NCBI GenBank assembly: GCA_950097015.1
Contig: CATNEN010000030.1
Location: forward strand, 2,046,001 to 2,110,000
DNA from: Macrostomum hystrix
Taxonomy: Eukaryota > Animalia > Platyhelminthes
Direction of reading: 5' to 3'
Length of the DNA stretch: 64,000 nt
Positions 14,572 to 64,000 of the stretch are shown here, piece after piece. Both the position numbers and the translations under genes were made by a program. The notes under the pieces were generated by a model. It worked only from the letters and a program-made list of their open reading frames with translations, ran no database searches and was not told the origin of the DNA. Position 1 is the stretch's first letter. The number at the start of each line of letters is the position of its first letter.

Positions 14572-17500
14572 ATGTCGCAGCAGGCAAAAGGTCGAGGCCG
14601 AGCTCGTGGCCGCGCTGGCCCGCGCCCAGTGGAGGATGCTGGCGCCGGATCACTGGCTCCTACCTTACCAGTTGCCAGTCCTCAGCAGCCTCCAGGCTTA
14701 AGCGCTCCAGCCGGTGCTTCTGCTGCTGTTGCCGCTGCTGTCGTCCCTGGTGATCAAGGCAATCGTAATTATCAGGGGCAACAATCTACCGATGTGGATC
14801 AGCTTTCAAGTAGCATGGCAGGAACTACGTTTGAACGCGAGGCCGGCGGCGAACGCGGTGGTCTAAGGCGCAAGCTGCTCCGCTTTCAAATGCCCCAAGT
14901 GCGACCGGAAGGTGCTATTGTTAAGAAGGGCAACTGTGGGACTCCGATTCAGGTTTTAACTAATTTTATTCCGATTCAAACCGAGAGCAACTGGTGCGCC
15001 TACCAGCTGGCTGCGGACTTTCGCCCAATCCTCGGGGCTAAGCCGCTGCGAGAGAAGCTTCTCAACGATGCCGAGCAGGTGCCAAAGCCATTCGTGTACG
15101 ATGGCGGCTGCCTGTACACCAGGCGACCCTTAGCTTCGGCGGAGGGGATCAAGTTCGCTGCCAGCATCAAATCCTGGAGCGGTGAGGTGGCCATTAGGCA
15201 GGTTAGCGTGATTGGCAAAAACACTCCGCAGTGGCTTCACCTGATGAATGTTGTGCTGAGCAAGACTCAAGTTCACATGAATATGCAGATGGTCGGCCGC
15301 AACTTCTATTATCCGGAGCAAGCCACGAAGCTTCCCCAACACCGCATGGAGGTAGGTTGGTTTGTAAATAGTAAAAATGCGCTCTATAAAATATTTTCCT
15401 TTCCTAATTGGGATCGCCCAGGCTTTTCTATTGGCAACACATACAAAGTCGTATCGGCTCGGTGGCGGCAGCTTAAATTTTGCCATTACGTGCTGCCAAT
15501 GGAAACAGCCGGGTCATTCACAATGTCGCTCTCTTGCTTAGGCCACAGTCAATTTATAATATTCCGATGTCGTTAAAATCCATTTCCTTAGGTTTGGCCT
15601 GGCTTCGAAATGGCCATTCAACCGTCTGACGGCCCCCTTATGCTTCACCTGGACGTATCCCATAAGATAATTCGCACCGACACAGTGCTCGCTGTCATGT
15701 ACGAACTGTACGAAAGTGTAGGCAATATTGGTTTTCGTTCTGCGGCCACTGACGCCTTAGTAGGCCAGATTGTCATTACGCCCCACAATAACAAGACCTA
15801 CCGAATAGACGGCATTGAATGGGACAAACGTGTCAGCGAAACCTTCCCGCTCCGAAATCAGGCTACGCGACAGAGCGAAGAAATAACTTTCGCGGAGTAT
15901 TTCCGTCGAAAGCATGGCAAAGCTCTGACGGATCCCGAACAGCCACTGCTCGTGTCAAAGCCGCGCAAAAGCGACCTGCCACCAACTAAGGGAGGTCGTC
16001 GCGAGTTTGCGGAGAGCATTCTCCTACCGCCAGAGATCTGCTACATGACCGGCCTCACCGATGATATGCGCGCCGACCGCAATCTCATGAAGGACCTGGC
16101 TACGTTCACGCGTATTGACCCTGCCACCCGCTGCGGCAAGCTGGTGAACTTTGCTCGTACAATGGCCCAGAATCAAAGGTGTCAGCAGGTGCTGGGCGAG
16201 TTCGGCCTGACTGTGACGCCCAATCCGGTCGAGGCCACCGCGCGCCAGCTGGCCCCAGAGACCGTCAGGATGTCGCGGCCGGTCAAGCTTGATCCAGAGC
16301 GAGCCGATTGGGACAATGCGCTTAAGAGTAACGGCATGTTCCAGCCAGTGAACTGCAAGAACTGGATCTTTGTCTACTTCCAACGAGATGAGCAGGCGGC
16401 CGCCGACTTTTGCCAGAAGCTCAGCCGGGCCTCCCAGTCGCTCGGCATGTCCTTTGGCGAGCCCTACGTGTTGACAGTGCCCCAAGATCGCGACCAGCTG
16501 TGGGTGAAGACCATCGAGGAAAACATTAACCAGGAGCTAGATCTGGTGTTCTGCCTGCTGCCCAGCAATAAGAAGCAGCGCTATGACGCAATCAAGCGCT
16601 TGTGCTATGTCAACAAGCCGGTGCCCAGCCAGTGCGTGCTGACAAAGACCATCCGCAATCCCGCCAAGGTGATGTCGGTGGCAACGAAAGTGGCGCTGCA
16701 GATCTCCTGCAAGCTGGGCGGCATCGCCTGGGCTGTGACAATCCCCATAAAGAGCACCATGATAGTGGGCATGGACAGCTACCACGACAAGAGGCAGAGC
16801 ATCTCCGTGCAGGGCGTCGTGTTCTCTCTGAACGAAACCTTCACGCAGTACTATTCGTACTCGCCTATTGTCAAGGGCGGCAAGGCTGAGATTCACCAGC
16901 ACCTCGAGGTTGGCTTTACGATGGCGCTGAAGAAGTTCAGGGAGAAAAACGGCGACCTGCCGATGCGCATCATCCTGTACCGCGATGGTGTCGGTGACTC
17001 CATGCTTAAGGAGGTGAGTTGAAAATGCGTTACTGGCTGTTTTTCCATGTACACTTAAACAAAAAGTCTATACAGACTACACAGGGCAAAGTAAACAGAT
17101 AGCTTTTGCTTGATTCCATGCTACGAGGGGTGTCCAAAAAGTAGTGGAATTTTTCAACGTAGCTCATAATCGGATTCAGACACATTAAATTGCTATACGT
17201 TTTATGAAAGCGGATTCATGTATCTCTGTAATACTCGTACTTTTATTATCTTCTGGCATTCAAAATTTTAGTGCAGTTCCCCAGGGTACAACTTACAGAA
17301 ACTTTAACAAGTAGTCATAGACAAGAAACATGACAACAATAAATAATAAGAATAATATAATTGATTACACCCAATCGGGCCAGATGTGCAGCCGACAGCA
17401 CAGCCGCAGCTATTGCGCGGCGCATCTGAAGGCTGCGTACAGCTGTTCAGTCCATGGACTGGGGGGACGCCACATCCACCTTTAATTATCCCAGCTGATG

Positions 17501-21383: not shown

Positions 21384-23285
21384 ATGGACAGGGTGAGTTA
21401 GTAACTGAAGCCACGTTTGCACCTACGCTCGTATCTTTGATTCAGAGCCCCGAGGTACCTGATTGAGATCATTTACACGAAACTTCAGACTCGAAGCACA
21501 GGAAAAGTCTGCATTCATGGGCTCAAGCAAATCCTGCACGAAGACGATGTCGATTCTCTGGTCATCCAGCTGGAGCTGGCCAAGCCCCTCGCCCTGTCGC
21601 AGATCCTGCAGCTCAGCATCGAGCAGCTCACTGACGGTGGCAGCATTGCGGACTGCATCAAGTGCGGCAGGTCCGACTTCACTTCGTTCCTCATCGCTCA
21701 CTCCACTGTGCTGGAAGTTGCCGCATGCACACTCGCTCTCAACTGTGTCACTCACCTGATCGGTGAGCTGGAGGCTGCAGCCGACTCGGCTGATGCACTT
21801 CATCAAGCAGTCGGGCAGCAGTCAGACAGCGGCGAGTCGGTGGTGCCGCTGCACTGTCTCATTGTGAAGCTGTTTACTCTGAGAGGCGATGCTGCATTTG
21901 AGCACAGGGCGGTGAGATTTGTGCGCAAACTGTCGGTCGAGCAGCCTCAGTTCTTCCGCGTGTGCGCAGAGAAGGAGGCGTTCGGCTACAATGCTCTCGA
22001 GCTGGCAGTCAGTCTGCAGCTGTTCTCACTCGCTGAGTGCATTCTCGAGTCGAGCAAGTACTGCGGAGAGGTCAGTCTCGTAGCAGGCGTGAAGGTGCAG
22101 CGAGTTGATCTGAGCGAGTACGACTTCGCCACGGGTGAAAGGTACGACAAGAGCCCGCTGAACATGCTGGCCTTCATGGCCATCAAGGAGCTGTTAGGGC
22201 CGGTGAAACAGTTTATGGATCATAAAATTATAAAAGAGTGGTCGCGCAGAATTTTGTGCTACATTCGGAGATCAATGCTCATCCGAGCAGTGATTTGCAC
22301 AGTTTACAAGACAATCATTCTTCTGTTTGCTCCTGGAAACATCTACAGCACAATCACTGTGAAAAGATTCGAACTGCTAGGCAACTCTAGTTGGACATGT
22401 CCTCTGTTTAACATTCATTCTCGGTGGCATTCTGTTTGTTCGCTGACGACTGTTCAAATATCAATGAGTCTGTCAATATCAGCGTTCACCGTCGAGTGCC
22501 TCGTGTTTTTATTAGCAAATCTTGCATTGGCACCAACTCTCGGCGCCTACAAGTCATACTTCGACGCCATCAGTAGCTTCATGCAGACGAAAAGCCAGAC
22601 ATTGATTCGAGTCACAATTCTGCTGCTTTCATTCGTTATGTTGTTTTTCTCAATAATAGTTGCTTCCGATCCGGCATCGCTGGTCCCTCAAACTGAGTCG
22701 CGCCCACTTCTGCTGGTAATCCTGGACTACACCACCTGTGTAATCTACATTCTTTCAGCACTCACCTTGGTCTTTGACTGGATGTTGGTCATAGAGAAAA
22801 TGGTCCTACTCTGGGATTCGGTTGAGATTTTCTCCTTCTTCATCGTCATCATTCTCCTGGTGATGTCTCTGTTCTGCTGGCTCGTATCGCTGATCGTGCC
22901 TTGCGATCCAGTTTTCGACCCCAGAATGGAATCGGAGATTTCCTACACAGTCTTGACCTTCTATCTGCTGTTGAACAACGGAGGCCTGTCCAGAGACTCG
23001 GTGCGAACCCTGGGCGCGGTGTTCCTGGTGACTCACGCTCTCATCGTCCTGTTCTGCTTCAACTTCCTGATCGCTCTGCTGTCCCAGCGCCTATCGGTGG
23101 CTTCGGACAACCTGCGACACATCAGCACTGCCCATCGGCTGCACTCGTACCACTTTATCCGGATGGGCTGCAGGAAGGTACGAAAGGCGCTTCGAGTTGA
23201 GTGGCCCCGCCCTGCTCCTAGCCAACAAGACTCTGTGGCTGGCTCTGACAGCCTCTGCAGATTCGGCCTGTTTGTGGAGACCTAG
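21384..23285 (+). CDS. TRP(V)-like 6-TM cation channel, copy 1; probable micro-exon 21384-21392 (MDR) plus a large exon from ~21489
   Basis: The frame is open from 21441 to TAG at 23285. Features: a degenerate ankyrin-type motif (EKEAFGYNALELAV), a TRPV-like linker (VDLSEYDF..KSPL), six hydrophobic segments, pore helix YTVLTFYLLLNNGG and S6 HALIVLFCFNFLIALLSQRLS (compare TRPV6 LLMLNLLIAMM). ATG GAC AGG|GTGAGT pairs in phase 0 with CTTCAG| at 21488. Confidence 0.8.
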
Positions 23286-23599
23286 AGCCTATTCGGAAGG
23301 TACAACGAAGCCGCTGTGACTTTCAGCTTATTGATTTAGAGCGCAATACTGTCGGCGACATCGAGAGACCCCCAACCGAGCATCCGTGACGGTCTGTTGT
23401 AAAGCGTTTTTTAACCCATCCTGGGCATCCCATCAGCTTGGTAAATTATAATTTTAATGATTATCGAAGTTTAAGTGGATTTTTGCTACCATTTTTGGCG
23501 ATTCGCTACTGAAGCAACTTCTATTACGAGTAATAATGCCTTCTATTTTACTGCTAAACCGACAGTAAAATATAAATTTGCACAATCACAGAAAAAACA

Positions 23600-23790
23600 C
23601 CTAACCCAGTGTGTCAGGTAAATAGCCAGTGGCGCAAGGACGCAGCCATTCTACCCCAGTTAATTCTGGTACCATTTTTACAGTTCTTTTTAACTGAGAC
23701 AATTGGGAATTATTGCTCAAAAAGAGGTTGTTAAATTTTTTGAGCTGAGATTCGAACTCGCAACCTCTTGGTTGCGAATCCCTCATATGG
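23600..23790 (-). mobile_element. Degenerate copy of the tRNA-SINE family seen at 17330
   Basis: Minus-strand B-box GTTCGAATC, plus GGTACCATTTTTACAG matching GGTACCAATTTAACAG of the 17.5-kb copy. Confidence 0.6.
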
Positions 23791-23829
23791 AGATTCCTAA
23801 TAAAATAATCTGCGAAGAGGACCAATCTC

Positions 23830-24772
23830 TAAATCGCATGGATGTGTCAAAATCGAAGAGACTGCTGAATTTGTGTAATGCAACGGTTTTTATGTAATTG
23901 TATGGGTTTAGCGTAATGCTAAAAGTTAAGTGCTGTGGCTGGCAAGCCAGCGAGGTCTTGTTGAGTCGATGTAGCTGCTTATTGAGTCTGGAGCTCCTGC
24001 ATTTCCGTCTGCTCACGGCGGCTGCGATGCGGCAGTGACAAAGCTTCTAGAGGCAGCGGCGAATCTGGATCTTCGTCGTCAGAATGGATCGACGCCGCTA
24101 TTGATTGCAACGCAGGCTGGACACGTGGGGATAATTTGGCAACTTCTGTGGATCTTCTCCAGTGCTCATTGCTGCTTAGTATACGAGATTGCCGTCTATT
24201 GACTGCAAATCGATTTGCTCTCATGCTAGCCGCTGCTAACTTAGTTTGCTGTGAGCAACAAAAGCGAATTGCAGGAGCACCATTGCTGGAGTTATCTCAC
24301 AGGAACCTAGTCAGGCACTTTTTCATCACGAGAGAGAACTCGAGCTAATTTGATCAGTTTCAAGGCCACAGCGATCGCTTCCATGCAAAGCTGGTCACCA
24401 TGGAGATGGCGGGTAGCGTGCTAGCTGACCTATGGAGAGCAGGCGATTATTAGGATTTCAATCCCGAATGATCGCAATAAATTTGGTGCCAAGAGCTCAG
24501 AAGCAAACAAGGCCAAGAAGTTACAGCTGGCTAAGGCTGCAAATCAAATATTCTAGCTGCAGTACATGCGCAAATATTGAATCTATCGAGCCCTCAAAAC
24601 TAAAGCCTGCAGTAAATGCTCTGACCAAACTCTTTTTATACTATCAACGCTAACTAACACTGGCCAGAAGGAGCACTGCGTTGAAGCTAAAAAAATGGAA
24701 AGTTGCGTATCACATTGTCGATCCTCGCAAGCACTTCCGGGAAAAACATCATCAAAGAACCCAGCCATGCAC
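23830..24772 (+). pseudogene. Relic of the ankyrin exon of the ANK-cGLR gene
   Basis: Fragments LWLASQRGLVESM*LLIESGA and AVTKLLEAAANLDLRRQNGSTPLLIATQAGHVGIIWQLL align with VWLASKRGHVMAMEPLMKAGA and AVAKLLEYGASPDIRRQDGSTALLIAAQTGHASVVRCLL of the 30141-31339 exon. The relic has stops and frameshifts. Confidence 0.8.
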
Positions 24773-26691
24773 GTGAGTGGGCTTTCCGGCACTTTCTCCG
24801 TAAAATGTATGCGGCTAGCGTATTACCATCCTTATAATAATAATCGATTCATAACCGTGAACTGAAATTACAGAAATCCGCATCTATATCAGTGATGCCC
24901 GAGCTGAAGCGCATCCTTCACGAAGACGATGTCGATTCTCTGGTCATCCAGCTGGAGCTGGCCAAGCCCCTCGCCCTGTCGCAGATCCTAGCTGCAGCTC
25001 AGCATCGAGCAGCTCAGCATTGCGGACTGCATCAAGTGCGGCAGGTCCGACTTTACTTCGTTCCTCATCGCTCACTCCACTGTGCTGGAAGTTGCCGCAT
25101 GCACACTCGCTCTCAACTGTGTCACTCACCTGATCGGTGAGCTGGAGGCTGCAGCCGACTCGGCTGATGCACTTCATCAAGCAGTCGGGCAGCAGTCAGA
25201 CAGTGGCGAGTCGGTGGTGCCGCTGCACTGTCTCATTGTGAAGCTGTTTACTCTGAGAGGCGATGCTGCATTTGAGCACAGGGCGGTGAGATTTGTGCGC
25301 AAACTGTCGGTCGAGCAGCCTCAGTTCTTCCGCGTGTGCGCAGAGAAGGAGGCGTTCGGCTACAATGCTCTCGAGCTGGCAGTCAGTCTGCAGCTGTTCT
25401 CACTCGCTGAGTGCATTCTCGAGTCGAGCAAGTACTGCGGAGAGGTCAGTCTCGTAGCAGGCGTGAAGGTGCAGCGAGTTGATCTGAGCGAGTACGACTT
25501 CGCCACGGGTGAAAGGTACGCGAAGAGTCCGCTGAGCATGCTTGCGGAGATGGCAGTGCGAGATCTATCTGAGCCGGTGAAGATGTTCATGGACCACGAC
25601 ATTGTATCACGCTGGTCAAAGAGAGTTAGCTCGATGCACTTTTCTATGGCCATCAGGGCTGTTCTCTGCTCAAGTTATAAGCTTTTCATTCTCGCATTTG
25701 ACCCAACCTGCATCTACTCATCAGTGACAGTGCAGAAGTTCAGCACACTCGGTAATTTTACTGAGTGTTCGCTTTATCCACTGCACCATCACTGGAACAA
25801 AGATTGTCTGTCGCGTGCGTTTAGAGTGGCACTGATCAGCTTTATGTTCTTATACATGCTGGAATGCGTCATCATTGCACTCTTGAACATAATTTATGCA
25901 TCGGCAGTCCGACGATCAGGTACTTCAGTGCTAATGGCCTGTGCCAAGCATATCCGGTACAACAGACAGGCGGTGATGAATGAATAATCCCAACCCTGTG
26001 CTGCATCATGCTGATGTACTACGGCTCTAGAGCCTATAACGACACGGCTTCGCTTGCCGGCTCCATTCTTGATCGCGACTTCCAGCTGAGAGTCCTGGAC
26101 TATTCAAACAGCCTTGTCTACATTCTCACCATCATGACTGGATGCTGGTCATCGATAAGATGGCACTACTGTGGAATGTATTCGGCGTGTTTCTGTTCTT
26201 TGTGCTCATAATATTTATTGTGATGTGCCTGTTTGGCTGGTTGATTGCTCTGATAGTGCCGTGCGAGCCTAGCTTTGACTCGAGCATCAACTCAAGCATT
26301 CTCTCAACGGGCCCCCCTGCTTTCATTTTAACTGCTAATTAACAACGGCGGCCTCTCCAAAGATTCGATGCACTCTCTAGGCTTAGTGTTTCTGGTGACT
26401 CTCGCGCTAATCGTGCTTTTCTGCTTCAATTTTCTCATTGCCCAGCTTTCTGAACGGTTGTCCAATGCGTCACAAAATCTTAGACACGTCTGTCTGAGCT
26501 TTGAGCTGTACGTTGGCTACATCGCTGCCCTCCCGGCAGCGGTTCTGCAGAGGGCCTTTCAAAAGCGACTTGGCAACCGGCTGCGGCTTTTGCCGGCCTC
26601 TATTAAACTGGATTATCTGCACAGAATTGTAGAGCTGAATTCTTTCAAAACTGTCAAGACTTTTTTGAAGCAGACAAAGCAGTATATATAG
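24767..26691 (+). pseudogene. TRP(V)-like channel, copy 2, pseudogene
   Basis: It has the same N-terminal cassette as copy 1, but with a 4-nt insertion (~24989) and a 12-nt deletion (~25016). Further frameshifts occur near 25980, 26145 and 26335. Pore and S6 motifs (NNGGLSKDS, LIVLFCFNFLIAQLSERLS) are still visible. Probable micro-exon ATG CAC|GTGAGT with a phase-0 acceptor at 24873. Confidence 0.85.
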
Positions 26692-27614
26692 CTTCTCTTT
26701 AAACTCGCGATATTCAAATTGGCCCCTTTTTTCGCAATTTGCTTTATTTCCAGAGGGCAAAAAGAACATAATGAGCACAATGAGTCGTAATGAGCTGAAT
26801 GTCCAGAATCTAGTAGGAGGTATAGAGACGTTACACAAACGTACAGTTTAATTTAACCGATTCTTGTTTTATGCGCTTAAACATAGGTGACGATTTCATA
26901 GCTGATCTACAATATTTAACAGTAGAACTACCATGAGAGGGGGGTAATTCCCCCCTAACAATTTTTGCAATACACCAGCTCTTATGAGAAAAATCTGACC
27001 TTCGGCCAGAACCAATGGGAATCTTGACGGTCTGAAGGGCTGGCGACTTGATTCTTGTTTCAGAAGATGAGCAACAAAAAGTTGGCTCGAGTTCTTGATT
27101 TTCATGTGCGGTAGGGATCCACCTTGGTATAAAAACAGTCGGTAAAATGGCTTGGTTGTCCTACTGTAAAGTAATTCTATGATACCTGTGAAAACATCAG
27201 ATGAAAGGTGTTGTAAAGGCCTCTAAAAACTTAAGACTTGCACGGTCGAGGCGTTTATATAAGAACCAAAGCGCACGAATGTATTTATCTGTGACAAAGG
27301 TATTTACATTTTCTGAAAATGATTCGATCATTTATATAATAAATATTATTTTTTTATTTTTACGTTATTTCGTTATTTTTACGAACAATCAAACAACCGA
27401 GCTTCAATCAAACTAGTGTGACATATTCGATTCAAAATACTCACGGATGTACACGCAATTTATCATTTTAAACGTAAATATTGAAGATGAAATAAAGCGA
27501 GCCTCTAGCTAAATTGATTTGAGACACTACTCGTACTAGAAGGCATGCTACAAACCCTAGTTTTCTAGTCAACCTCTGTCAGCAGCAATAGCATTGTCAA
27601 ATACCACGAAATGT

Positions 27615-30600
27615 CTAGGTGTGTACAGTTGGCGGCAGTTCTCGCATTCGGCCGCTGCGACGTCGTCTTCGGCGACATTTTTCAGTTGCGCCGCCGTTGG
27701 CCGCCTCTAGGCGCAGCTGGTGAGCCACGCCTAATAAGGTTCGTCGCATGCAGCTCTCGCGCAGGTCCGGCTGAAATCATGGATTAATGACGAAACAGCC
27801 TGCTTACACTTTCCAAAGGAGTACACTTACCGTTCCGACAAGGTGGTCCGAAGGTAAGGGACAGGACAGGATGATTGTCGTCGCGGAAATGGTATTCCTT
27901 TATTTATTTGTCTTTTTGCTTGCGACAGTCACTGTCCGTCCTCTTTTTGCCGTTCCCTTCATTCTCTAGCCCCCTGTTGTCTGCCTGCCCCCACCCACGC
28001 ATTCAATTATCGATTTTCCGACCCCCGTCGCGCTAACCCCTTCAGTCTGGCCCCAATCTGTCCAATCTCTCTCCCCCGACTATTTATCGATCGTTATTAT
28101 CGATCGTAGTAAAAGGTAGTGTAGTTTTTTTCCCCCTAGTCTGAACTTATTGGGTACACAATTTTTATAGGACGGGCCTCTTGCGTATAGATTTTGGGAG
28201 GAACTAAATGCACTCACCAGTCTTAACATGCCGTCGCTAAGCTTTGATTGTAGCGATGGCACGCTCGCGATGATGTCACTGTTGCGGTGGACGATGCTGG
28301 CTATAGTGTCCGCGTCGGGGCAGAACTGCAGAGCTAAAAGGATGTCGGAAACGTCGGCTTCCCGTTCGTGCTGCGTCGCCTCGAACCAGCGTCGCGACTC
28401 GTACTGGACCTCCGTCGGAATGAGCTCCAGACAGAGGCACTTGAGCAGGGCGCTGAAGTTCATGTAGAACCTGTTGCCGTAGAACTGCATGGCCAGCGGA
28501 AAATGTTCCCTGGAGAAGCGAGGAAGGAACTTCAGGTCGGGACGCCTGTCGTAGCGGAAGCAGAAGCGCCAGATCGAGTCACTCTCCGACAGCTGCCGAA
28601 AGACGTCCTCAGCGACCTCCATCGGCTCGGTCAGCTGCCGTTTGACGAGTCCTTTGCTGACCTGGTGATGAGCCACTGCTCTGAGTGTCCGCAGCGCAGC
28701 ATCTCGCTGACCGATCTTCAACTGGGTCATCGCTCTGAAGCTCTCTCGGACAGAGAGGGCGAAGTCAGGAATGCTGTCAATTACTGACATTTGCGGGTGC
28801 GAGTCAGTCGCTAAGTCTCGAAACAGATTCCACAAGACTGGATAGATACCGGTTAAGCTTATTTCGCTTTTGGCTGAGTGCACATCATATGTCACAGGTA
28901 CCAAGGTAAAAGGGTGAAACTGCAGGAAGCTGGAGTCGCTGATCGGTACCAGCTGTTCCATGAGTTTCATCAGAGGCTGCCTGCAGGTCGTTCATAGTGC
29001 TCCTCACCGCCTCCATGACGTCGCTCTTTGTCGAGTGGCCGCTGCGCAGATACACGGCGGCTCCGGGTGCGAAGAAGTGTCGCAGGCACTCGTGCTCTCC
29101 GCCCTGCTGCAGGCCGTCGAGCAGAATCTGCAGAGCTCGCCTGGTCAGCTGCAGCAGATTGTCGGCTCGCCAATCACTCGCCGGAGTCTCGTCCACCATG
29201 CGGAACAAGAGAGTCTTGGCCACGTAGGTCTTGAGTCCGCTCACGGTGTTGGAGAGGTGTCGCTTGATGAGGAACTTCAGGATGACGAACAGCTGGCCCT
29301 GCTCTGTGTTGAATCCTCGGATCATCCGCCTCTCCAAGAAGGTCGTGCTCAGCCGGAGCCACTCGCCCTCTTTGCCGGGAGGCGCCGCTCGGACCAGGTG
29401 GCACAATGATTGCTCGCGCTCGAATCTCAGTTGTTTAAGCAGCTCAGGAGGAATGTGGGTAGGTCGTCCGTGCGCAAGGACTTCAACATCCGGATAGCAG
29501 CAGGTGCGCAGTGCGTTCACGTAGTCCATGGCCGGCGACTGCAGCGTCCCAAACTGAGGATTGCTGGGATTGGCCGCTGGAATGCGGTGAAAAATTCAGA
29601 TAATTAATCATTAAAAAACTGAGTTTAGATTCTCATCTGCTCTCAAAAAACCGAACGAATTGCGCTTGAATTAGTTTTTGCATATATTCTCTTGGCTTAC
29701 TTGCAACAGGATAGGGAACGTAGCCGTGTTCGTACTTGACGACCTTCTCTTGATCAGGAGCCTCGCACTCGCAGCGTCCTTCGATATGCAGCACGACAGT
29801 GAGGATCTCGGTAAAGTCTATGTCAGAGTCTTTGTCAATCTGACCATTCAGGAACCTCAGTGAGCTACCCCAACCTTCACTGAAGCTTCCCACAACATTA
29901 ATGTTTGTCCCAGGTCTCAGTCCGCGAACTATGTCCTGGAGAATGTCTGCCTCGGCCTGCTGTACGAGCGCGCTTTCTCTATTGAAACCGGATCGGCTGA
30001 GGGCCTGGAAAAGCTCCGTGCTGAACTGGCCATCGGACGTGATGGTTCTGAGGTGGATTGACAATGAAAAATGCCCTGATAAACATAAAACTTTATATTC
30101 AGTCAATAAGTGGACTATCTTTTAACAAATACGATCGTACCTATTGGACTGAGCAGTCGACGTGAACTTTGTTTTCCCTGCCGTCGCACTGCGGGTGAAT
30201 CGGCGAAGGCACTCGGCAGCCAGACTGGCACACGATTTCGGAACGGTGCGCTGTAGAACTTCGGCATCCACATGAAGGCTCCTAAGTAAGCGAAGAGCAT
30301 TGTTTCCTAGACCATAGCAACATGCGGCAACGATAGCAGCTTCGATGTGACCCATGTGAGGCGAACTTGCGCCAAGAAGAAGGTCAACAGCTTCCGTGTC
30401 TGTGCAGTGACTGGCGGCTAGTGAAACAGGTAGTTCATCAGCCTTGTTCTCTAAGTTAGCATCTGCCCCAGACTCAAGCAGCGTCTTTATCACATTGGTG
30501 TGACCCTTCTTGGCGGCCCTGTGCAATGACGAGTCTCCATTGGCATCCTGAGAATTTACTGACGCACCGGACCTTACAAGTTGCTTGACGACCTCATTGT

Positions 30601-31339
30601 TTCCGTTTTCAGCCGCTGTGTGAAGTGGCGATGAACGTACATTGTCCAGAGCATTGACGTGGGCACCGGCCTCGATCAGGAAGGTCACCAACTCTAAATA
30701 GCCCTTTTGAGAGGCCTTGTGCAACGGAGTCCACTTGGAGTTCGTCTTCTGGTTTACGTCGGCTCCAGCCTCCAACAGATGACGAATGACTGCAATGTGA
30801 TTCCACCAGCAGGCTGCAAAAACAGCGGCAGAGCCAAATATGTTGGCCTGGTGCGGATCGGCACCGGCTTCAAGCAGCAGTTCCACCACTCTCTGCTGGC
30901 CGTACTGAGCCGCCATGAGCAACGGTGAGGAGCCATCGTTTCTCTGGAGATTGGCATCGGCTCCAGCGTCTAGCAGACAACGAACAACGCTGGCATGACC
31001 AGTTTGAGCGGCAATGAGTAGTGCCGTCGATCCATCCTGACGCCGGATATCTGGACTGGCGCCGTACTCGAGCAGCTTTGCCACAGCTGGATCGCAGCCG
31101 CCCTGAGCAGCTGCAAATAGAGGAGTCGCTCCGTCGAACTCAGCGCAATCCAGCTGAGCACCAGCTTTCATCAGAGGCTCCATTGCCATTACATGACCCC
31201 GCTTACTCGCCAGCCAAACAGGCATGTGACCAGACGAGTCACGGGCGTCCGGGTCAACACCCGACTTCAGCAGCGACTCGGCCGCAACTCTGTTGCCGCT
31301 GCTGCATGCGACATGTATGTTCAGTGCCGATTCAGCCAT
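27615..31339 (-). CDS. Ankyrin-repeat / cGAS-like receptor (cGLR, Mab-21 nucleotidyltransferase) fusion, ~1019 aa after correcting one +1 frameshift at ~28980; exons 30141-31339, 29701-30047, 28218-29576, 27615-27770
   Basis: About 10 ankyrin repeats join through a phase-2 93-nt intron (AG|GTACGA...CTCAG|A) to the NTase core VVGSFSEG..DSDIDF. A phase-1 intron leads to MDYVNAL..CYP, and the Mab-21 helical region follows (EWLRLSTTFLERRMI, LKTYVAKTLLF, DW..DNLL, CLRHFF). The last exon is inferred from splice signals only. Confidence 0.8.
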
Positions 31340-32167
31340 TCTGTTCTGCGCCTAAAGTCTCAGCTGTTCTTCCCCTTGAATGCAGCGGAGCTTATATATT
31401 TTTATGAAGAACTTCCACGTGACTGTCTAGCTTCTAGTTTGCTCTTAGTTATTTGCACGCATTTCGATGCTACTTTCACAGGGAACATTCTGCAATGACT
31501 AGAAATAGACTGCGATCGATAAGTGCTAATTATCGAAGTGTGACAGCACCCTTCCGGTGCATTCAGCTCTTGCAGTGGGTTTTTGCAACGATAATCAGAT
31601 CAAAACATGCACGCCTTCGCGCAACCCGAAGTTAGAACAGCTGTTGTTTTTACCGCCCCTTGAAAGGCCAGCGCGCTATCGACTCTAGGTCGTAAAAAGC
31701 TTTTTATAGATAACTAGTTTAAGTGTTTATTTTTCCATAACTCGCTGTCAGCATGCGTGTATTGCTTTAAGATAAGAAAAAAAACACCATCCTCAACTCA
31801 AGATTGTGCGATGAGCTTTCTTCCATTGCTATTTTTCAGTGAGTCATCGGTGTATATAGGCAAATTTCTAATTATAACCTACTTAATGCTGGTTTGACCT
31901 TGTATGATAATTTATGACAACTTATTATACTGTTTTACGATTACCTGTTTACTTAGGCTGGGCAACAGCTAAGCGAGATAACTACCTGTGCTCACAGACC
32001 ACAAGGCCACAGTTATATTTTTGGATTTCTTTTTTTAATTGAGGTCAAGTCAACAACATGCATACCGAAGTTTAAAGATAAGTCTGTGATCAATTTCAGC
32101 TGTTAAACAGCAACAGTTAAAGTCATAAGGAACATGTATCAAAACAGCCAGAACGGTGCATGGACTA

Positions 32168-32346
32168 CATATTCAACCAATCCACATTCAACCAATCCGC
32201 ATTCAACCAATCCACATTCAACCAATCCGCATTCAACCAATCCACATTCAACCAATCCACATTCAACCAATCCACATTCAACCAATCCGCATTCAACCAA
32301 TCCACATTCAACCAATCCACATTCAACCAATCCGCATTCAACCAAT
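32168..32346. repeat. 15-bp minisatellite (ATTCAACCAATCCRC)n, ~12 copies, just downstream of TRP copy 3
   Basis: Visible period-15 array. Confidence 0.95.
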
Positions 32347-32361
32347 TTTAAAACAAGAACA

Positions 32362-34211
32362 TCACGCAGGCTCCAGCAGTCGGCAGAACTGAAGCCGCTT
32401 CTCTCCCTCGAAAGCAACAGCGGCACCGCTGCGCAGAGAACGGCGCAGATACGCAACGCTCAGCTTGTACACGTGGTGAATGTACAGCTTGTAGGAGGCG
32501 CAAATATAAGGCAGGTTGCGAGATGCGGCAGAAAGCCGCTCAGCCAGCAGAGCAACCAGAAAATTAAAGCAGAAAAGTGCAATCAGTGCGTGCGTCACCA
32601 GGTAGAACACACCAAGTGATTTAGCCGACTCCTGGGACATACCACCGTTGCTGACAGTCAGGTAAAAGTTAAGCAGCCCGTAGGACGGATTCGCGAACAT
32701 CTCCAGGTCAAAGCTGGCCTCGCAAGGAATAATCAGAGTGATTAGCCAGCAGAAAAGGCCAATGACTAGGAAAATAATAGCCATGAAGAAAAAAAAGATT
32801 CCGACAATGTTCCACAAGAGGGCCAGGGTCTGTATAGCCAACAGCCAATCGTAAACAATTGTCATTATTGTTATGATGTACAGCGTGCCTGTTGAGTAGT
32901 CCATCATTCTGAGGCCAGCACCTCTGTCTGACAGAGACAAAACGCGAATTCTCTCCGGCACAAACGCCAGGCAGAGCATGAGAACCAATGCGCAAACCGT
33001 CAAAAGGATCTGACTAGTGCACCTGACGTGACAGGCCAAGGCACTTAAATACGAACCGCTGCCCTGCACTACCTTGACGTAGATAAGGTGAAATGTCAGA
33101 GAGGCTGCACACTCCAGGATGTATCCGCAGGCTAGAAGGGCGACAACGCAGCGCACGGCCATCAGGTCGCAGAAGCCCGACATTCTGTAGTGCATTGAAA
33201 AAAGCGGGCAGCTGGTGGCGTTGGTCACCGCACCCGACTCGGCGAAGTACCTCACAGTTAGAGAGGCGTAGATACAGGCAGAGCCAAAGAATAGTAGGAA
33301 CAGCTTGTAGATTGTGCACACTATGGCTCGAATGATCAATGCTCGCTTCATCCCACCGCTCGTTGCATCCGACCATTTGTCAATGATTTCATGATCCAGA
33401 AATTTCTTCAGAGGCTCTGAGAGATTTCTTACTGCCTCGATAGCTAAAATGTTCAGCGGGCTCTTGTCGTACCTTTCACCTGTGGCGAAGTCGTACTCGC
33501 TCAGATCAACTCGCTGCACCTTCACGCCTGCTACGAGACTGACCTCTCCGCAGTACTTGCTCGACTCGAGAATGCACTCAGCGAGTGAGAACAGCTGCAG
33601 ACTGACTGCCAGCTCGAGAGCATTGTAGCCGAACGCCTCCTTCTCTGCGCACACGCGGAAGAACTGAGGCTGCTCGACCGACAGTTTGCGCACAAATCTC
33701 AGCGCCCTGTGCTCAAATGCAGCATCGCCTCTCAGAGTAAACAGCTTCACAATGAGACAGTGCAGCGGCACCACCGACTCGCCGCTGTCTGACTGCTGCC
33801 CGACTGCTTGATGAAGTGCATCAGCCGAGTCGGCTGCAGCCTCCAGCTCACCGATCAGGTGAGTGACACAGTTGAGAGCGAGTGTGCATGCGGCAACTTC
33901 CAGCACAGTGGAGTGAGCGATGAGGAACGAAGTGAAGTCGGACCTGCCGCACTTGATGCAGTCTGCAATGCTGCCACCGTCAGTGAGCTGCTCGATGCTG
34001 AGCTGCAGGATCTGCGACAGGGCGAGGGGCTTGGCCAGCTCCAGCTGGATGACCAGAGAATCGACATCGTCTTCGTGAAGGATTTTTTTCAGCTCTGGCA
34101 TCTCCAGTGGCGTTCTTTGCACCTGCAATCGGTGTTGTTCTTCGCAATGTATATAAGATGCTCAACAATTTTTTGCATTGTGTTGAAACAGGATCGCACA
34201 ACTCTTACCAT
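32362..34211 (-). CDS. TRP(V)-like 6-TM channel, copy 3, intact; ATG-only first coding exon 34209-34211 plus exon 32362-34122
   Basis: Uninterrupted 588-codon ORF with the shared N-cassette, six TM segments, pore SYGLLNFYLTVSNGG and S6 HALIALFCFNFLVALLAERLS. ATG|GTAAGA and TTGCAG|GTG define an 86-nt phase-0 intron. Confidence 0.85.
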
Positions 34212-56510: not shown

Positions 56511-57201
56511 TCGAATTTCTACCTCGTCTGACGTTGGCCGCAAAACAATGCATTGATTATTCCGAAAGTTGTCATGGGAGAGGTTAATCTAGATAAGAGC
56601 AAACTAAAAGTCACGCCCAAACGTTTTAAACAAACGAGCAGCAAGAATACAAAAATATAGTAACAGGCAAAGCAGATGTACATTAGCGCCAGTACTTTAT
56701 GTAGGAATGCAGCGCGCTGCTTTTTCGCCTGAGTACCGAACAGTTGGCCGTCTTTGCACAGTGCATTCGTCGTGGCTCGATATCAACAAGACGGTAACAG
56801 AGAACTTGTTCCACGTTCTAGTGCCTTCGCACAATAAATTCGAGATGGGCAGCAATGCCATGTCCACCCACGAATGCTTGCGAATAAGACAGAGATCGAG
56901 CAACTAAAGTAAAAGTGCAAACCTGATTGACAGCTCGCGATGAAGGCCACATAGCCGAGACGAGCTCATGCTCAGTTTTTTGGCGCTAATTACTTCCCAA
57001 CTCACCCTCCGATCATCTTTCTAATGGGCTGACAACGGGACTCAGCCAGCGCAAATCTTAAGGGAGGAGGCTTTAAATGAATGCACTTTTATCCCGAAAT
57101 ATTGAGTCGGCTAACTGGCTCAAACACGCTCTAAATAAGCCGCAACCTCAAAAAGTTTAGGATTAATTTTAAAGCGCTATCAATGAAAACATATACTTGA
57201 T

Positions 57202-57290
57202 TCGGTGGTGCCGCTGCACTGTCTCATTGTGATGCTGCTCCCTCGGAGAGGCGATGCGGCATTTGAGAGCAGGGCGGTGAGCAGCCTCAG
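57202..57290 (+). pseudogene. Diverged, deleted relic of the TRP N-terminal cassette
   Basis: TCGGTGGTGCCGCTGCACTGTCTCATTGTGATGCTGCTCCCTCGGAGAGGCGATGCGGCATTTGAGAGCAGGGCGGTGA aligns with the cassette (VVPLHCLIV..RGDAAFE.RAV) with several substitutions and a deletion. Confidence 0.75.
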
Positions 57291-57514
57291 CACGTATTGA
57301 TGAAAGCACAATATCAAATACAGGCTTATCAGTAATGAAAACCCGCAAAGTATCGGTATTGTACAATACGAGCTAATAGCCTTGAAGGCCGCCAGATTTT
57401 CATTATTTATGACTTAAAAGATTATACTTCTACTACTGAAGAATTAGTACTAAATATATTCAGTGATAGTCTGCAAAGATTGAAAAAAACGAATTTGGAG
57501 AGAAAAAATTATCA

Positions 57515-59341
57515 TCAGTTATCATTTTCAATCAGTCGGTAGACATAGCGACAGTCAGGTAAGATTTTCCGCAAAAGCAGACTGTCCAAGCAACTCGCCT
57601 GACGGGATTTCACAGCGCTTCCTCGGCGCAGGCGGATGATGCAGGCGGGCAGGGACAGGGCCAGGAAGCGCATGTGCAGCCGATAGGCTAGGCAGATGTA
57701 CCGGCAGTTGCTAGCCGCCGCGGACAGCCGCTCGGACAGCAGGGCTACGAGAAAGTTAAAGCAGAACAGAACAATTAGGGCGTGCATCACAACATAGGTG
57801 GCGCCCAAGGCTTGCACGGAGTCGCGGGACAGGCCGCCATTGTTAACCAGCAGGTAGAAATTGATGAGGCCCTGTGAGAACATGTCGCTGTTAGCCCCGG
57901 GGTCGAAGTTCGGCTCGCAGGGCACGATCAAGGAGATCAGCCAGCAGAACAGAGTGATCACGCTGATGATGATGGTCAAGAAGAAAGCGAATGTGCTCAT
58001 CACATTCCACAGCAGGGCGATGCTCTCCAGGACCATCATCCAGTGGGACACAATGGTCAGAATGGTGAGGATGTACATCAGGCTCGAGCTATAGTCCAGC
58101 AGCCTCAAGTAGACATCGCGCTGCGTAATCGGCAGCGTCATTGACTCGGCATGATCTGCCGCGCCGAGAGCCAGCACGAACATAGCTACTATGTTGAGTA
58201 GTATGCCAAGCATCAAGAACATATCGCTGTTGCTGATGGCGTGGCTAAGGATGGCCCTGACTCGTGTTCCTGAGCGCCTTGCCTTGCATGCGAATATGCA
58301 GTTAGTCAAGAGGGCCGTGCAGCATTCGACCACGTAGCACAGAAGCAAAAAGTACAACATGATTTGCGAGGGCAGCGATTTGCAAATTGCGTTCAAACGA
58401 ATGTGAAATAAAAGCAGCGCACAGCTGCTGGTGTTTGTAGGGCTACTGCTTATGCGAGCAATGGACACTTGCGAGTAAATGCAAGCCGACCCAATAGACA
58501 GGAGAAAAACCTTGCATGCGGAGGAAAGCACTGCTCGTAAAAGAAAGAAATTTTGCAAGGAGCTCATGACTAAATGTGACCAAAGGACTATAATGTGATG
58601 GTCCATGAACCTTTTGACAGGATCCGAAATGTCCGAAATAGCAGACTTGGCTAAAATGCTCAGCGGACTCTTCGCGTACCTTTCACCTGTGGCGAAGTCG
58701 TACTCGCTCAGATCAACTCGCTGCACCTTCACGCCTGCTACGAGACTGACCTCTCCGCAGTACTTGCTCGACTCGAGAATGCACTCAGCGAGTGAGAACA
58801 GCTGCAGACTGACTGCCAGCTCGAGAGCATTGTAGCCGAACGCCTCCTTCTCTGCGCACACGCGGAAGAACTGAGGCTGCTCGACCGACAGTTTGCGCAC
58901 AAATCTCACCGCCCTGTGCTCAAATGCAGCATCGCCTCTCAGAGTAAACAGCTTCACAATGAGACAGTGCAGCGGCACCACCGACTCGCCGCTGTCTGAC
59001 TGCTGCCCGACTGCTTCATGAAGTGCATCAGCCGAGTCGGCTGCAGCCTCCAGCTCACCGATCAGGTGAGTGACACAGTTGAGAGCGAGTGTGCATGCGG
59101 CAACTTCCAGCACAGTGGAGTGAGCGATGAGGAACGAGGTGAAGTCGGACCTGCCGCACTTGATGCAGTCCGCAATGCTGCCACCGTCAGTGAGCTGCTC
59201 GATGCTGAGCTGCAGGATCTGCGACAGGGCGAGGGGCTTAGCCAGCTCCAGCTGGATGATCAGAGAATCAACATCGTCTTCGTGAAGGATGCGCTTCAGC
59301 TCAGAAAAATGTGCGATTTTCGTAGCCCTCTTCCTAGCCAA
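57515..59341 (-). CDS. TRP(V)-like 6-TM channel, copy 4, intact ORF; first coding exon unresolved
   Basis: 608-codon ORF with the shared N-cassette, pore SQGLINFYLLVNNGG and S6 HALIVLFCFNFLVALLSERLS. The ORF-track start is TTG next to a CTAAC..TAG acceptor at 59334, so an upstream micro-exon is likely (for example ATG CTC GA|GTATAC at 59395-59402). Confidence 0.83.
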   Translation of the reverse strand: MARKRATKIAHFSELKRILHEDDVDSLIIQLELAKPLALSQILQLSIEQLTDGGSIADCIKCGRSDFTSFLIAHSTVLEVAACTLALNCVTHLIGELEAAADSADALHEAVGQQSDSGESVVPLHCLIVKLFTLRGDAAFEHRAVRFVRKLSVEQPQFFRVCAEKEAFGYNALELAVSLQLFSLAECILESSKYCGEVSLVAGVKVQRVDLSEYDFATGERYAKSPLSILAKSAISDISDPVKRFMDHHIIVLWSHLVMSSLQNFFLLRAVLSSACKVFLLSIGSACIYSQVSIARISSSPTNTSSCALLLFHIRLNAICKSLPSQIMLYFLLLCYVVECCTALLTNCIFACKARRSGTRVRAILSHAISNSDMFLMLGILLNIVAMFVLALGAADHAESMTLPITQRDVYLRLLDYSSSLMYILTILTIVSHWMMVLESIALLWNVMSTFAFFLTIIISVITLFCWLISLIVPCEPNFDPGANSDMFSQGLINFYLLVNNGGLSRDSVQALGATYVVMHALIVLFCFNFLVALLSERLSAAASNCRYICLAYRLHMRFLALSLPACIIRLRRGSAVKSRQASCLDSLLLRKILPDCRYVYRLIENDN

Positions 59342-61791: not shown

Positions 61792-63898
61792 TCAGTTAAT
61801 GAGCATTGCGCACCGGTTTCTAGTGTGTCCCGGCTGCCCGCAGGCACCGCACTTTCTCTGCTTCTTCTGGCCGTCGCCACCGCCCCCGTCGCCACCGAAG
61901 GAGCTGCCGGCGCCGCCGCCGCCACCGCCGCGCCTATTACTATTGCCAAAATTCGTTTTCTGGAAGCTGCCACGTACTAAAGCCGCCTCTGCCTCTACCA
62001 CTTCCGCCGTCTGCGCCGCCGGCTCCGCTGAAACTTTCGGTGCCAAATCCTCCGCCGCCACCGCCTCCGGGCTCGTCGGCCCACTGAAAGAAGCCACAGC
62101 CTTGGTTCATTGGCTTGGCGCAGGCAAAAAATGGTCGGCCCTTGTTTGGACCCTCCTTTTGTACCGTTCTCTCGCGAGCCGCTTCACCACACTTGCAATT
62201 GACGTCGCTGCCGCCTCCGCTGACACCTCCGCCTAGTCCACTACCTGAAGCTCCAAATCCGCCGCCACCACCGCCAGCTGCGACTAATCCACCGCCGCCA
62301 CCAAATCCACCTCCAACTGCGCCAAATCCGCTGACACCGCCGCCCCCAAATCCACCTCCAACTGCGCCAAATCCGCTGCCGCCGCCGCCACCGCCGAATC
62401 CGCTGCCGCTGGTACCAGTGCCGCTACCGCCGGCTCCACTGGGAGGGCCGTCAGCCCACTGGAAGTGATTGCATGTACCGGAAGCGCACTTGTAGAATAG
62501 TCTACCGTGGTTCGGACCCTCTTTGCGAACTGTGAACTCGCGTACGGGTTGGCCACACGAGCAGGCAGCTAAAGCGGCAGCTGAGGCTGCGGGGGTGGCG
62601 TTGGACGCCGTCGACTGTGTCGGCTGGACATTGAACGTCTGGCGATCTTGCGGCTGCAGAAAAAGGCGCTGCTGCATCGAGCGGGTCGCAACGTCCGGCG
62701 GCTGCAACTCGTTGCCATGGAAACTGATAGCACTTGACTTTGGTTGGCCGCCAGTGCTACCTCCTCCGCCGCCGCCGCTGCTGACGGCGTTAGCGGAGCC
62801 GCCAAACGCACCGACATAGTCAGGATCGCAGAAGACACAGATTGTTCGCTCGGCCAAATCGCAGAACGGCATCGGCGCGGCCTGGCTAAATTGCAGCGTC
62901 AGCTTTCTGACCTGCCCGCCAGCGCCGGCTGTTGAACAATGCGGACAGTGTTCAGCCGAGACGGCAGCACGGCGGACAGAGTCTGGCAGCCAGACGGCCC
63001 GCCGGCAAGTCGGAAAGGCTAAGCAGCCAACAAAGAAGCCGACGCCATCTCGCTTAGTTTTCAGCGCCATGTCAGCCGTGGTACACTGCGGACATCGGCG
63101 GACAATACTTGGCAAGGCCTGGCCAGGTACGCCCGCCGCGTCGCCAGTTGGCAGGCCGGCCGGAGCATCCGCCACCGGCTGCTCGTCGAGGTAGTGGCCG
63201 ACCCTTGCGTCCAATAGGTTGGCCTGACGACAGGCTTCATCAAAGACACGCCTGTAGCGTTCAATGTGGTACTGGAGCACCTCCTGTAAAATAATAAAAA
63301 GTAAACGGCGAGAGTAACATGACTTGATTGTCAATGTCATCTAATAAGTACTTTATGGAGAAGCTTTAGCCTAATGCAATCATACCTGTTTAGTACGCCT
63401 GCCCTCGCAGATGGCCTTTAGATCAGCTTCCAAAGCTGCCCGCAGGTCAGGCTTAGACATTTGAAAGCCCATTGCGTCATAGCCTTCAACTAGACCGATG
63501 CCCAGCTGGCCCGGGACCAGAAACCTGGCGTCCTGCAGGCCAACATAGAGTCTCTGCTTCACTGTCTCAATGTGCTCAGCGTGCGTAGCGTCGGTGCCAA
63601 TACCGTGCCTGTCCATCAGGGCGATGAGGTCCGCTTCGGTTAGTAGCGGCGGAGCCGACGTGCATCCGTCAACTAGTTTGATTTCAGTTGGCCGAAACTG
63701 TTGACCGTGCTGAAACAGCGGCAGCTCCTTGTCGCACCATTTGTCGTAGATGTACACCTCTAAATAGTTGCGCTCGATAATGGTCAGGCCCTTGGCTTCG
63801 AAGCCTTCGCCATTGATGTCTATGGCTACTTTAGTTTCGCGACCCACCGCGTCCTTGGAGCAGCAGGCAAGGAAATGGCGAGCGACCAGCTCGAATAC
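61792..63898 (-). CDS. TOP3A: DNA topoisomerase III alpha, 3' portion; exons 63386-63898 and 61792-63283 (one +1 frameshift ~61975)
   Basis: Type IA core end (YLEVYIYDKW, PPLLTEADLIALMDRHGIGTDATHAEHIETVKQR), a C4 zinc ribbon, two GRF zinc fingers (CSCG..TVRKEGPNHGRLFYKC..FQWAD and CKCG..TVQKEGPNKGRPFFAC..FFQWAD) and a terminal CCHC knuckle KCGACGQPGHTRNRC. Confidence 0.95.
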
Positions 63899-63929
63899 CT
63901 GGGCAAAAGATGTGACAGCATAGTTCATC

Positions 63930-64000
63930 ACAGCTGCCATTTTGTAGCCTCCATTCCCCACGGCTGCCATTTTGCAGCCTCCATTACCCACAGCAGCCAT
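63930..64000. repeat. 30-bp repeat in a TOP3A intron, truncated by the window edge
   Basis: GCTGCCATTTTGYAGCCTCCATTMCCCACR occurs about 2.3 times; it explains the spurious MAAVGNGG start of the ORF. Confidence 0.75.

Follow-up and report, generated by a model that had tools for sequence, protein, structure and literature searches.

Mirror-image TRPV-like channel genes and an ankyrin-Mab21 gene in the flatworm Macrostomum hystrix: probable old local duplication and decay

We analyzed a 64,000-nucleotide stretch of the genome of the flatworm Macrostomum hystrix (hereafter the window), in which genes for TRPV-like channels and a gene of the ankyrin-Mab21 type, similar to the cGAS-like receptors (cGLRs), are arranged in mirror image on the two strands. 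An earlier interpretation made from the letters of this DNA (the sequence-only reading) had proposed that a channel gene and its ankyrin neighbor were duplicated together as an inverted unit, and that the pair might form an immune module recalling the bacterial cyclic-oligonucleotide-based antiphage signaling system (CBASS). In our analysis, the mirror layout is likely the product of old local duplication and subsequent decay in a dynamic region, the adjacency of the two genes being accidental and not the mark of a signaling module. The genome searched was a 220-Mb assembly of 42 contigs, in which the window occupies C30:2046001-2110000. Among the ~147 Mab21-like and ~45 TRPV-like loci of this assembly, the tandem arrangement of a TRPV-like gene and an ankyrin-cGLR (ANK-cGLR) gene was found once only, one of its two cGLR partners is a relic, and the other carries a frameshift.

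Layout of the mirror-image units

Self-comparison of the segment between 19 and 37 kb revealed two inverted repeats. The stronger one (21521-22244 versus 33370-34093, 95% identity) corresponds to the 5' part of two long open reading frames (ORFs), namely channel copy 1 on the plus strand and channel copy 3 on the minus strand. The weaker one (23994-24123 versus 30996-31125, 73%) corresponds to a piece of the ankyrin ORF at 30122-31339 on the minus strand and its decayed counterpart on the plus strand. Downstream of copy 3, on the same strand, the ankyrin ORF starts at 31339 following a gap of 1,022 nt. On the plus strand, 648 nt separate the end of copy 1 at 23285 from the detectable ankyrin relic at 23933, or ~0.53 kb if the ankyrin start is projected from the relic. 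The order and distances given in the sequence-only reading (~1.0 kb and ~0.55 kb) are confirmed by these values, and so are its gene identities, the TRP channel being specifically TRPV-like and the neighbor being an ankyrin-cGLR-like gene.

The cluster comprises five channel copies, not three, of which copies 1, 3 and 4 have intact frames and copies 2 and 5 are broken. Ankyrin sequence is present downstream of two of the five copies only (copies 1 and 3); ankyrin and Mab-21 sequences were also looked for near copies 4 and 5, and none were found there. The genes of the window have eukaryotic features, including short GT-AG introns and spliced-leader acceptor motifs.

History of the two units

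The relic behind copy 1 corresponds to residues 41-123 encoded by the ankyrin exon of the window gene (tblastn E 1e-16; 49% identity in an alignment of 83 columns). Genome-wide, it is most similar to C30:1117523 (57%), the window gene (54%) and C30:1131548 (48%). Since these are three members of one ankyrin-cGLR subfamily located on the same contig, the relic is not a generic ankyrin sequence. It consists of an ankyrin piece of 72 codons only, and no nucleotidyltransferase (NTase) or Mab-21 remnant was found around it.

In a tree of the part of the channel genes that is not subject to gene conversion (see below), copies 1 and 5 form one group and copies 2, 3 and 4 another (99% support). Because copies 1 and 3 belong to different groups, the two arms do not derive from one recent inverted duplication. 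Synonymous divergence (dS) is 1.5-2.4 between the 3' halves of the channel genes and 1.1-1.6 between the relic and the ankyrin exon (71 codons). Both values are near saturation, so that they allow an old joint duplication without demonstrating it, and relative dating of the channel and ankyrin duplications failed for the same reason. The joint inverted duplication of the sequence-only reading is thus plausible, in that the gene order matches and both divergences approach saturation, but it is not demonstrated, as copies 1 and 3 are not sisters and the short relic cannot be assigned to a particular parent.

From these data we infer the following order of events. The cluster of five channel genes would have grown by old, lineage-specific local duplications. 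In an early one of these, a channel gene was probably duplicated jointly with the ankyrin-cGLR gene beside it, which would account for the matching gene order of the two strands. Of the two cGLR genes, one would then have decayed to the 72-codon relic and been partly replaced by channel copy 2, while the surviving one would have come to bear its present one-nucleotide frameshift. Most likely, the channel gene and the cGLR-like gene are transcribed and act independently of each other.

Recurrence of the channel-cGLR pairing

A recurrent adjacency of cGLR and TRP genes, which the sequence-only reading had raised, was not observed in the genome, the other paralogues being unlinked in any such arrangement. 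The flanks of the two closest cGLR paralogues (A and B, described below) were searched for a channel relic, and all matches had E >1. For a quantitative estimate, 47 TRPV-like loci were randomly placed within their own contigs and compared with the 147 Mab21-like loci. Chance would put 0.24 TRPV-like loci within 5 kb of a Mab21-like locus, and one is observed there, that of the window (P 0.22); no excess was found at 10 kb. As a control we used genes for G protein-coupled receptors (GPCRs) of the 7tm_1 family, 2/145 of which lie 2-10 kb from a Mab21-like gene; chance adjacency to so large a family is therefore common. The other near pairs of TRPV-like and Mab21-like loci are 10-50 kb apart and mixed in order and orientation: the genes of the pairs at C3:9310k and C2:2189k are divergently oriented, and in those at C1:3079k, C3:3236k and C5:5757k the upstream gene is the Mab21-like one.

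Table 1. Features of the channel cluster and of the ankyrin-Mab21 gene (positions within the window)
Feature	Position	Strand	Description
TRPV-like copy 1	21489-23285	+	intact intronless frame, without its own ATG
TRPV-like copy 2, pseudogene	24874-26691	+	4-nt insertion and 12-nt deletion near 24990; stops in 3' half
TRPV-like copy 3	32362-34122 (ORF 32362-34128)	-	intact, intronless, own ATG at 34101
TRPV-like copy 4	57515-59341	-	intact frame
TRPV-like copy 5	~8.5 kb past window end		broken
Conversion tract, copy 1	21523-22141	+	by sliding identity
Conversion tract, copy 2	24905-25515	+	by sliding identity
Conversion tract, copy 3	33473-34091	-	by sliding identity
Conversion tract, copy 4	58680-59298	-	by sliding identity
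Conversion tract, copy 5	~9.5 kb past window end		
Candidate trans-splice acceptor, copy 1	21483-21488	+	CTTCAG
Candidate trans-splice acceptor, copy 2	24868-24873	+	
Candidate trans-splice acceptor, copy 3	34123-34128	-	TTGCAG
Ankyrin-exon relic (ANK-cGLR subfamily)	23933-24148	+	dead; 72 codons, one in-frame stop, 11-residue deletion
Spacer between copy 3 and cGLR gene	31340-32361	-	15-nt tandem repeat 32171-32346, AATAAA-like signals, TATA-like box 31392-31398
Ankyrin-Mab21 (cGLR-like) gene	28083-31339	-	three exons, GT-AG introns
Exon 1, ankyrin repeats	31339-30141	-	Pfam Ank 3.8e-61
Intron 1	30140-30048	-	93 nt, GT-AG
Exon 2, NTase GS...DxD motif	30047-29701	-	115 codons
Intron 2	29700-29577	-	124 nt, GT-AG
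Exon 3, Mab-21_C and C-terminal extension	29576-28083	-	Pfam Mab-21_C 2.4e-6, 28 bits vs cut-off 24.1

Identity of the channels

No Pfam model matches the channel proteins of the window, and no relative of copy 3 was found by a single-sequence PDB search or by a word-index protein search. Language-model features of the channel led to TRPV, TRPA and TRPC clusters (0.96). We used two sequence profiles, A1 with eight paralogues from the genome itself and A3 with 90 sequences (the same eight paralogues and 82 relatives). In the PDB, the A1 profile gave weak matches only (PKD2L1 at 1.7e-3 and TRPV2 at 0.5), and in an exhaustive HMMER search it retrieved 168 relatives of ~600 residues with a best E of 4e-23. 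Five of the ten relatives that were scanned match Pfam Ion_trans above its cut-off, and several give weak ankyrin matches. The A3 profile matches TRPV6 at 4e-54, the values for TRPV6, V5, V4, V3 and V2 spanning 4e-54 to 1e-35, and also matches NOMPC; the alignments begin in the last ankyrin repeats, end at the helix that follows S6 and cover ~500 positions. This link to TRPV is transitive, as it passes through the relatives found at E 4e-23.

An AlphaFold model of copy 3 built with the A3 alignment (pLDDT 79, pTM 0.80) has a six-helix transmembrane fold with a pore helix and a helix after S6. A first model, built from the eight paralogues alone, was unusable (pLDDT 49). In a Foldseek comparison of the A3-based model with the PDB, the top 50 matches were all from the TRPV subfamily (TRPV1-6 and Nanchung-Inactive) at a probability of 1.00, with TM-scores to TRPV structures of 0.43-0.57 when normalized to the model length. 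Judging from the profiles and the modeled fold, the channels of the window are very divergent, short, intronless TRPV-like channels that are predicted to conduct cations. They belong to a wider TRPV-like family with ~45 loci in the genome. No nucleotide-sensing domain was recognizable in the channel, either with Pfam or in the AlphaFold and Foldseek analysis, where the whole model aligns to TRPV. The N-terminal domain of the channel is also unrelated to the ankyrin array of the cGLR gene, and no shared sequence links the two.

Copies 1 and 3 are 62% identical over 561 columns. The stops of pseudogene copy 2 comprise one TAG and then, in the C-terminal part, four TGA, one TAG and two TAA. Just downstream of copy 4 there is an inverted fragment of the channel N-terminal tract on the plus strand (57199-57348; residues 117-155, 50% identity). 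Two other genes located among the channel cluster have no relation to the channels: a PAZ/Piwi Argonaute-type gene (14572-17022, plus strand) and a TOP3A-type gene with GRF zinc fingers (61940-64000, minus strand).

Gene conversion and candidate trans-splice acceptors

A 5' tract of ~620 nt that encodes the ankyrin-repeat domain of the channel is 96-100% identical in all five copies, the pseudogene included. Sliding-identity analysis places sharp ends of this tract at the same position in every copy. Within the tract dS is 0.03-0.04, compared with 1.5-2.4 in the rest of the channel gene, where dN/dS is ~0.25-0.4. The identical sharp ends, together with the identity in every copy, point to gene conversion confined to one domain. 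This pattern indicates that the identity of the tract is maintained by conversion limited to the ankyrin domain, whereas the pore-forming part diverges.

An acceptor motif of the form [T/C]TNCAG lies 27-87 nt upstream of copies 1, 2, 3 and 5; in each case the reading frame continues from the motif into the gene without a stop. Neither copy 1 nor copy 5 has its own ATG. Because the spliced leader of Macrostomum lignano ends in ATG, a start codon donated by the leader is likely in the channel copies.

The ankyrin-Mab21 gene and its family

The three exons of the cGLR-like gene join in frame. They were searched singly, and in these exon-by-exon searches the canonical Pfam Mab-21 model (PF03281) gave no match to the window gene, and sequence searches of the PDB found no cGAS. 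Of the active-site motif, GS and DxD are conserved without change among the three closest paralogues, no position was found for the third acidic residue, and a palm domain was matched weakly (E 0.02). Compared with both closest paralogues, the window gene has an extra A at 28982 (minus strand) that splits exon 3 into two frames, and with this insertion it does not have an intact cGLR frame.

At least 147 loci in the genome match the Mab-21 exon, 90 of them above the Pfam Mab-21_C cut-off, and most have an ankyrin ORF directly upstream. The predicted ankyrin-Mab21 (cGLR-like) family of this genome therefore has about 150 members. The closest paralogues of the window gene, A (C30:1.117 Mb) and B (C30:1.130 Mb), are located on the same contig. 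Retroelement sequences accompany both: an ORF of a long interspersed element (LINE) encoding endonuclease and reverse transcriptase lies just upstream of paralogue A (C30:1113209-1115998, plus strand), and paralogue B is split by a pol ORF of a long-terminal-repeat retroelement with protease, reverse transcriptase, RNase H and integrase (C30:1125002-1127944, minus strand). The sole match to the STING ligand-binding domain in the genome is at C2:9104529-9104996 on the minus strand, in an open frame of 337 codons, and scores 25.6 bits against a Pfam cut-off of 27.

The ankyrin-cGLR family is not new. The fusion of ankyrin repeats with a cGLR was already listed as a domain architecture by Li et al. 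2023 (PMC9980059), and their screen table contains members of the family from M. lignano with the same motif in the GS/DxD region (PMC9980059). The window gene is one predicted member of this catalogued family.

Alternative explanations

Several observations weigh against an accidental neighborhood of independently transcribed genes. After subtraction of the tandem repeat, ~850 nt remain between the end of copy 3 and the start of the cGLR gene, which is below the 1 kb cut-off for operons in M. lignano. The frame downstream of position 28982 stays open for 303 codons, so that the frameshift could be a recent change or an assembly error. Within 25 kb of a Mab21-like locus, random placement predicts 1.05 TRPV-like loci and five are observed (P 0.004); at this distance the proportion of TRPV-like loci (5/45) exceeds that of the GPCR controls (2/145, Fisher P 0.009). 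The 25-kb threshold was chosen post hoc; we regard the excess as a weak post hoc signal, caused most likely by shared duplication-prone compartments, and as the one result that weakly favors the idea of a cyclase acting with a channel. A broad form of this idea would have the ANK-cGLR family signal partly via TRPV-like channels in place of STING, with the 25-kb excess as its trace and the homogenized ankyrin domain as a shared nucleotide sensor; we find it extremely unlikely. It is also very improbable that, within the window, a nucleotide messenger made by the cGLR-like enzyme acts on the neighboring TRPV-like channel, as a CBASS analogue whose genes were duplicated as a pair. Such coupling would be in line with the common gene order of the two units, with the 25-kb excess, and with the sub-threshold score of the only STING match, given which STING is no more than a candidate receptor of this large cGLR family. 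Against it stand the uniqueness of the arrangement among the Mab21-like and TRPV-like loci, the three of five cluster copies without an ankyrin partner, the relic and frameshifted state of the two cGLR partners, and a channel model made up of an ankyrin domain and a TRPV core with no recognizable sensor. Open-access papers and bioRxiv preprints, searched in full text, likewise yielded no link between cGLRs and TRP channels. The functional coupling suggested in the sequence-only reading is hence unsupported.

The same neighborhood could be read as a spliced-leader operon, which would give copy 3 and the cGLR gene a joint transcript although their products have no signaling link. We consider this improbable. 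The two genes share a strand, their repeat-adjusted spacer falls under the lenient 1 kb cut-off that was applied after repeat subtraction in M. lignano (PMC8629364), and a TTGCAG acceptor motif occurs ~150 nt upstream of the cGLR ATG; however, the spacers of M. lignano operons have a mode of ~100 bp (PMC8629364), polyadenylation-like signals occur between the two genes, and 53-59 nt upstream of the cGLR ATG there is a TATA-like box, with a similar box before paralogue A. Moreover, if a leader AUG were joined at the TTGCAG motif, it would start a short frame that terminates upstream of the actual cGLR start codon. The suggestion that the spacing is compatible with a trans-spliced operon is therefore borderline. 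As for the mirror image itself, it might be a coincidence in which the relic is the remnant of an independent ANK-cGLR insertion or of an ectopic copy, an explanation that we judge unlikely but worth weighing. The relic has the same similarity (57.7%) to the window gene as to paralogue A, which lies at a distance of 940 kb, no homology was found between the spacers that follow copies 1 and 3, and the family of ~150 members includes fragments and disrupted copies; the grouping of copy 1 with copy 5, and the missing NTase and Mab-21 remnants around the relic, agree with such an origin. Nevertheless, both units have the same strand relation and spacings of 0.53 kb versus 1.0 kb (~0.85 kb without the tandem repeat), and at the DNA level the relic is slightly more similar to the window ankyrin sequence (74.8% over 115 nt) than to that of paralogue A (70.5%). 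The near-saturated divergences do not reject co-duplication either. Old local duplication of the channel gene, probably together with its neighbor, followed by decay remains the explanation that we favor.

Comparison with known systems

The pair in the window resembles bacterial CBASS in that a gene for a putative cGAS-type nucleotidyltransferase adjoins a gene for a membrane protein on the same strand. In CBASS, however, such pairs recur across genomes and are co-transcribed, and the effectors have a nucleotide-sensing domain, whereas the pairing described here is unique in its genome, its nucleotidyltransferase partner is decaying, and no sensor domain is seen. If the two genes did function as a pair, theirs would be the first cGLR pathway of an animal to have an ion channel as its end point, and the membrane effectors of CBASS would have a eukaryotic counterpart. 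The evidence points against it, and the region mainly documents three other things: a flatworm-expanded and very divergent TRPV-like family, which escapes the standard domain models; fast gain and loss of members of the ANK-cGLR family; and a clear case of gene conversion, in which one channel domain is kept identical across paralogues and the pore-forming part diverges.

Compared with the ankyrin-fused cGLRs (PMC9980059), the window gene differs by the frameshift in exon 3 and by giving no match to the canonical Pfam Mab-21 model; it shares with them the ankyrin repeats, a putative NTase core and Mab-21_C. The channels differ from the TRPV subfamily in being short (~580 residues) and intronless, in their ~15% identity with relatives outside their own genome and lack of a Pfam match, in that the canonical TRP-box tryptophan is not evident, and in the homogenization of their 5' third among paralogues. 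At the same time, they have the organization of the TRPV subfamily, with an N-terminal ankyrin domain, a beta-sheet linker, six transmembrane helices and a pore helix, a conserved S6 asparagine, and a helix after S6.

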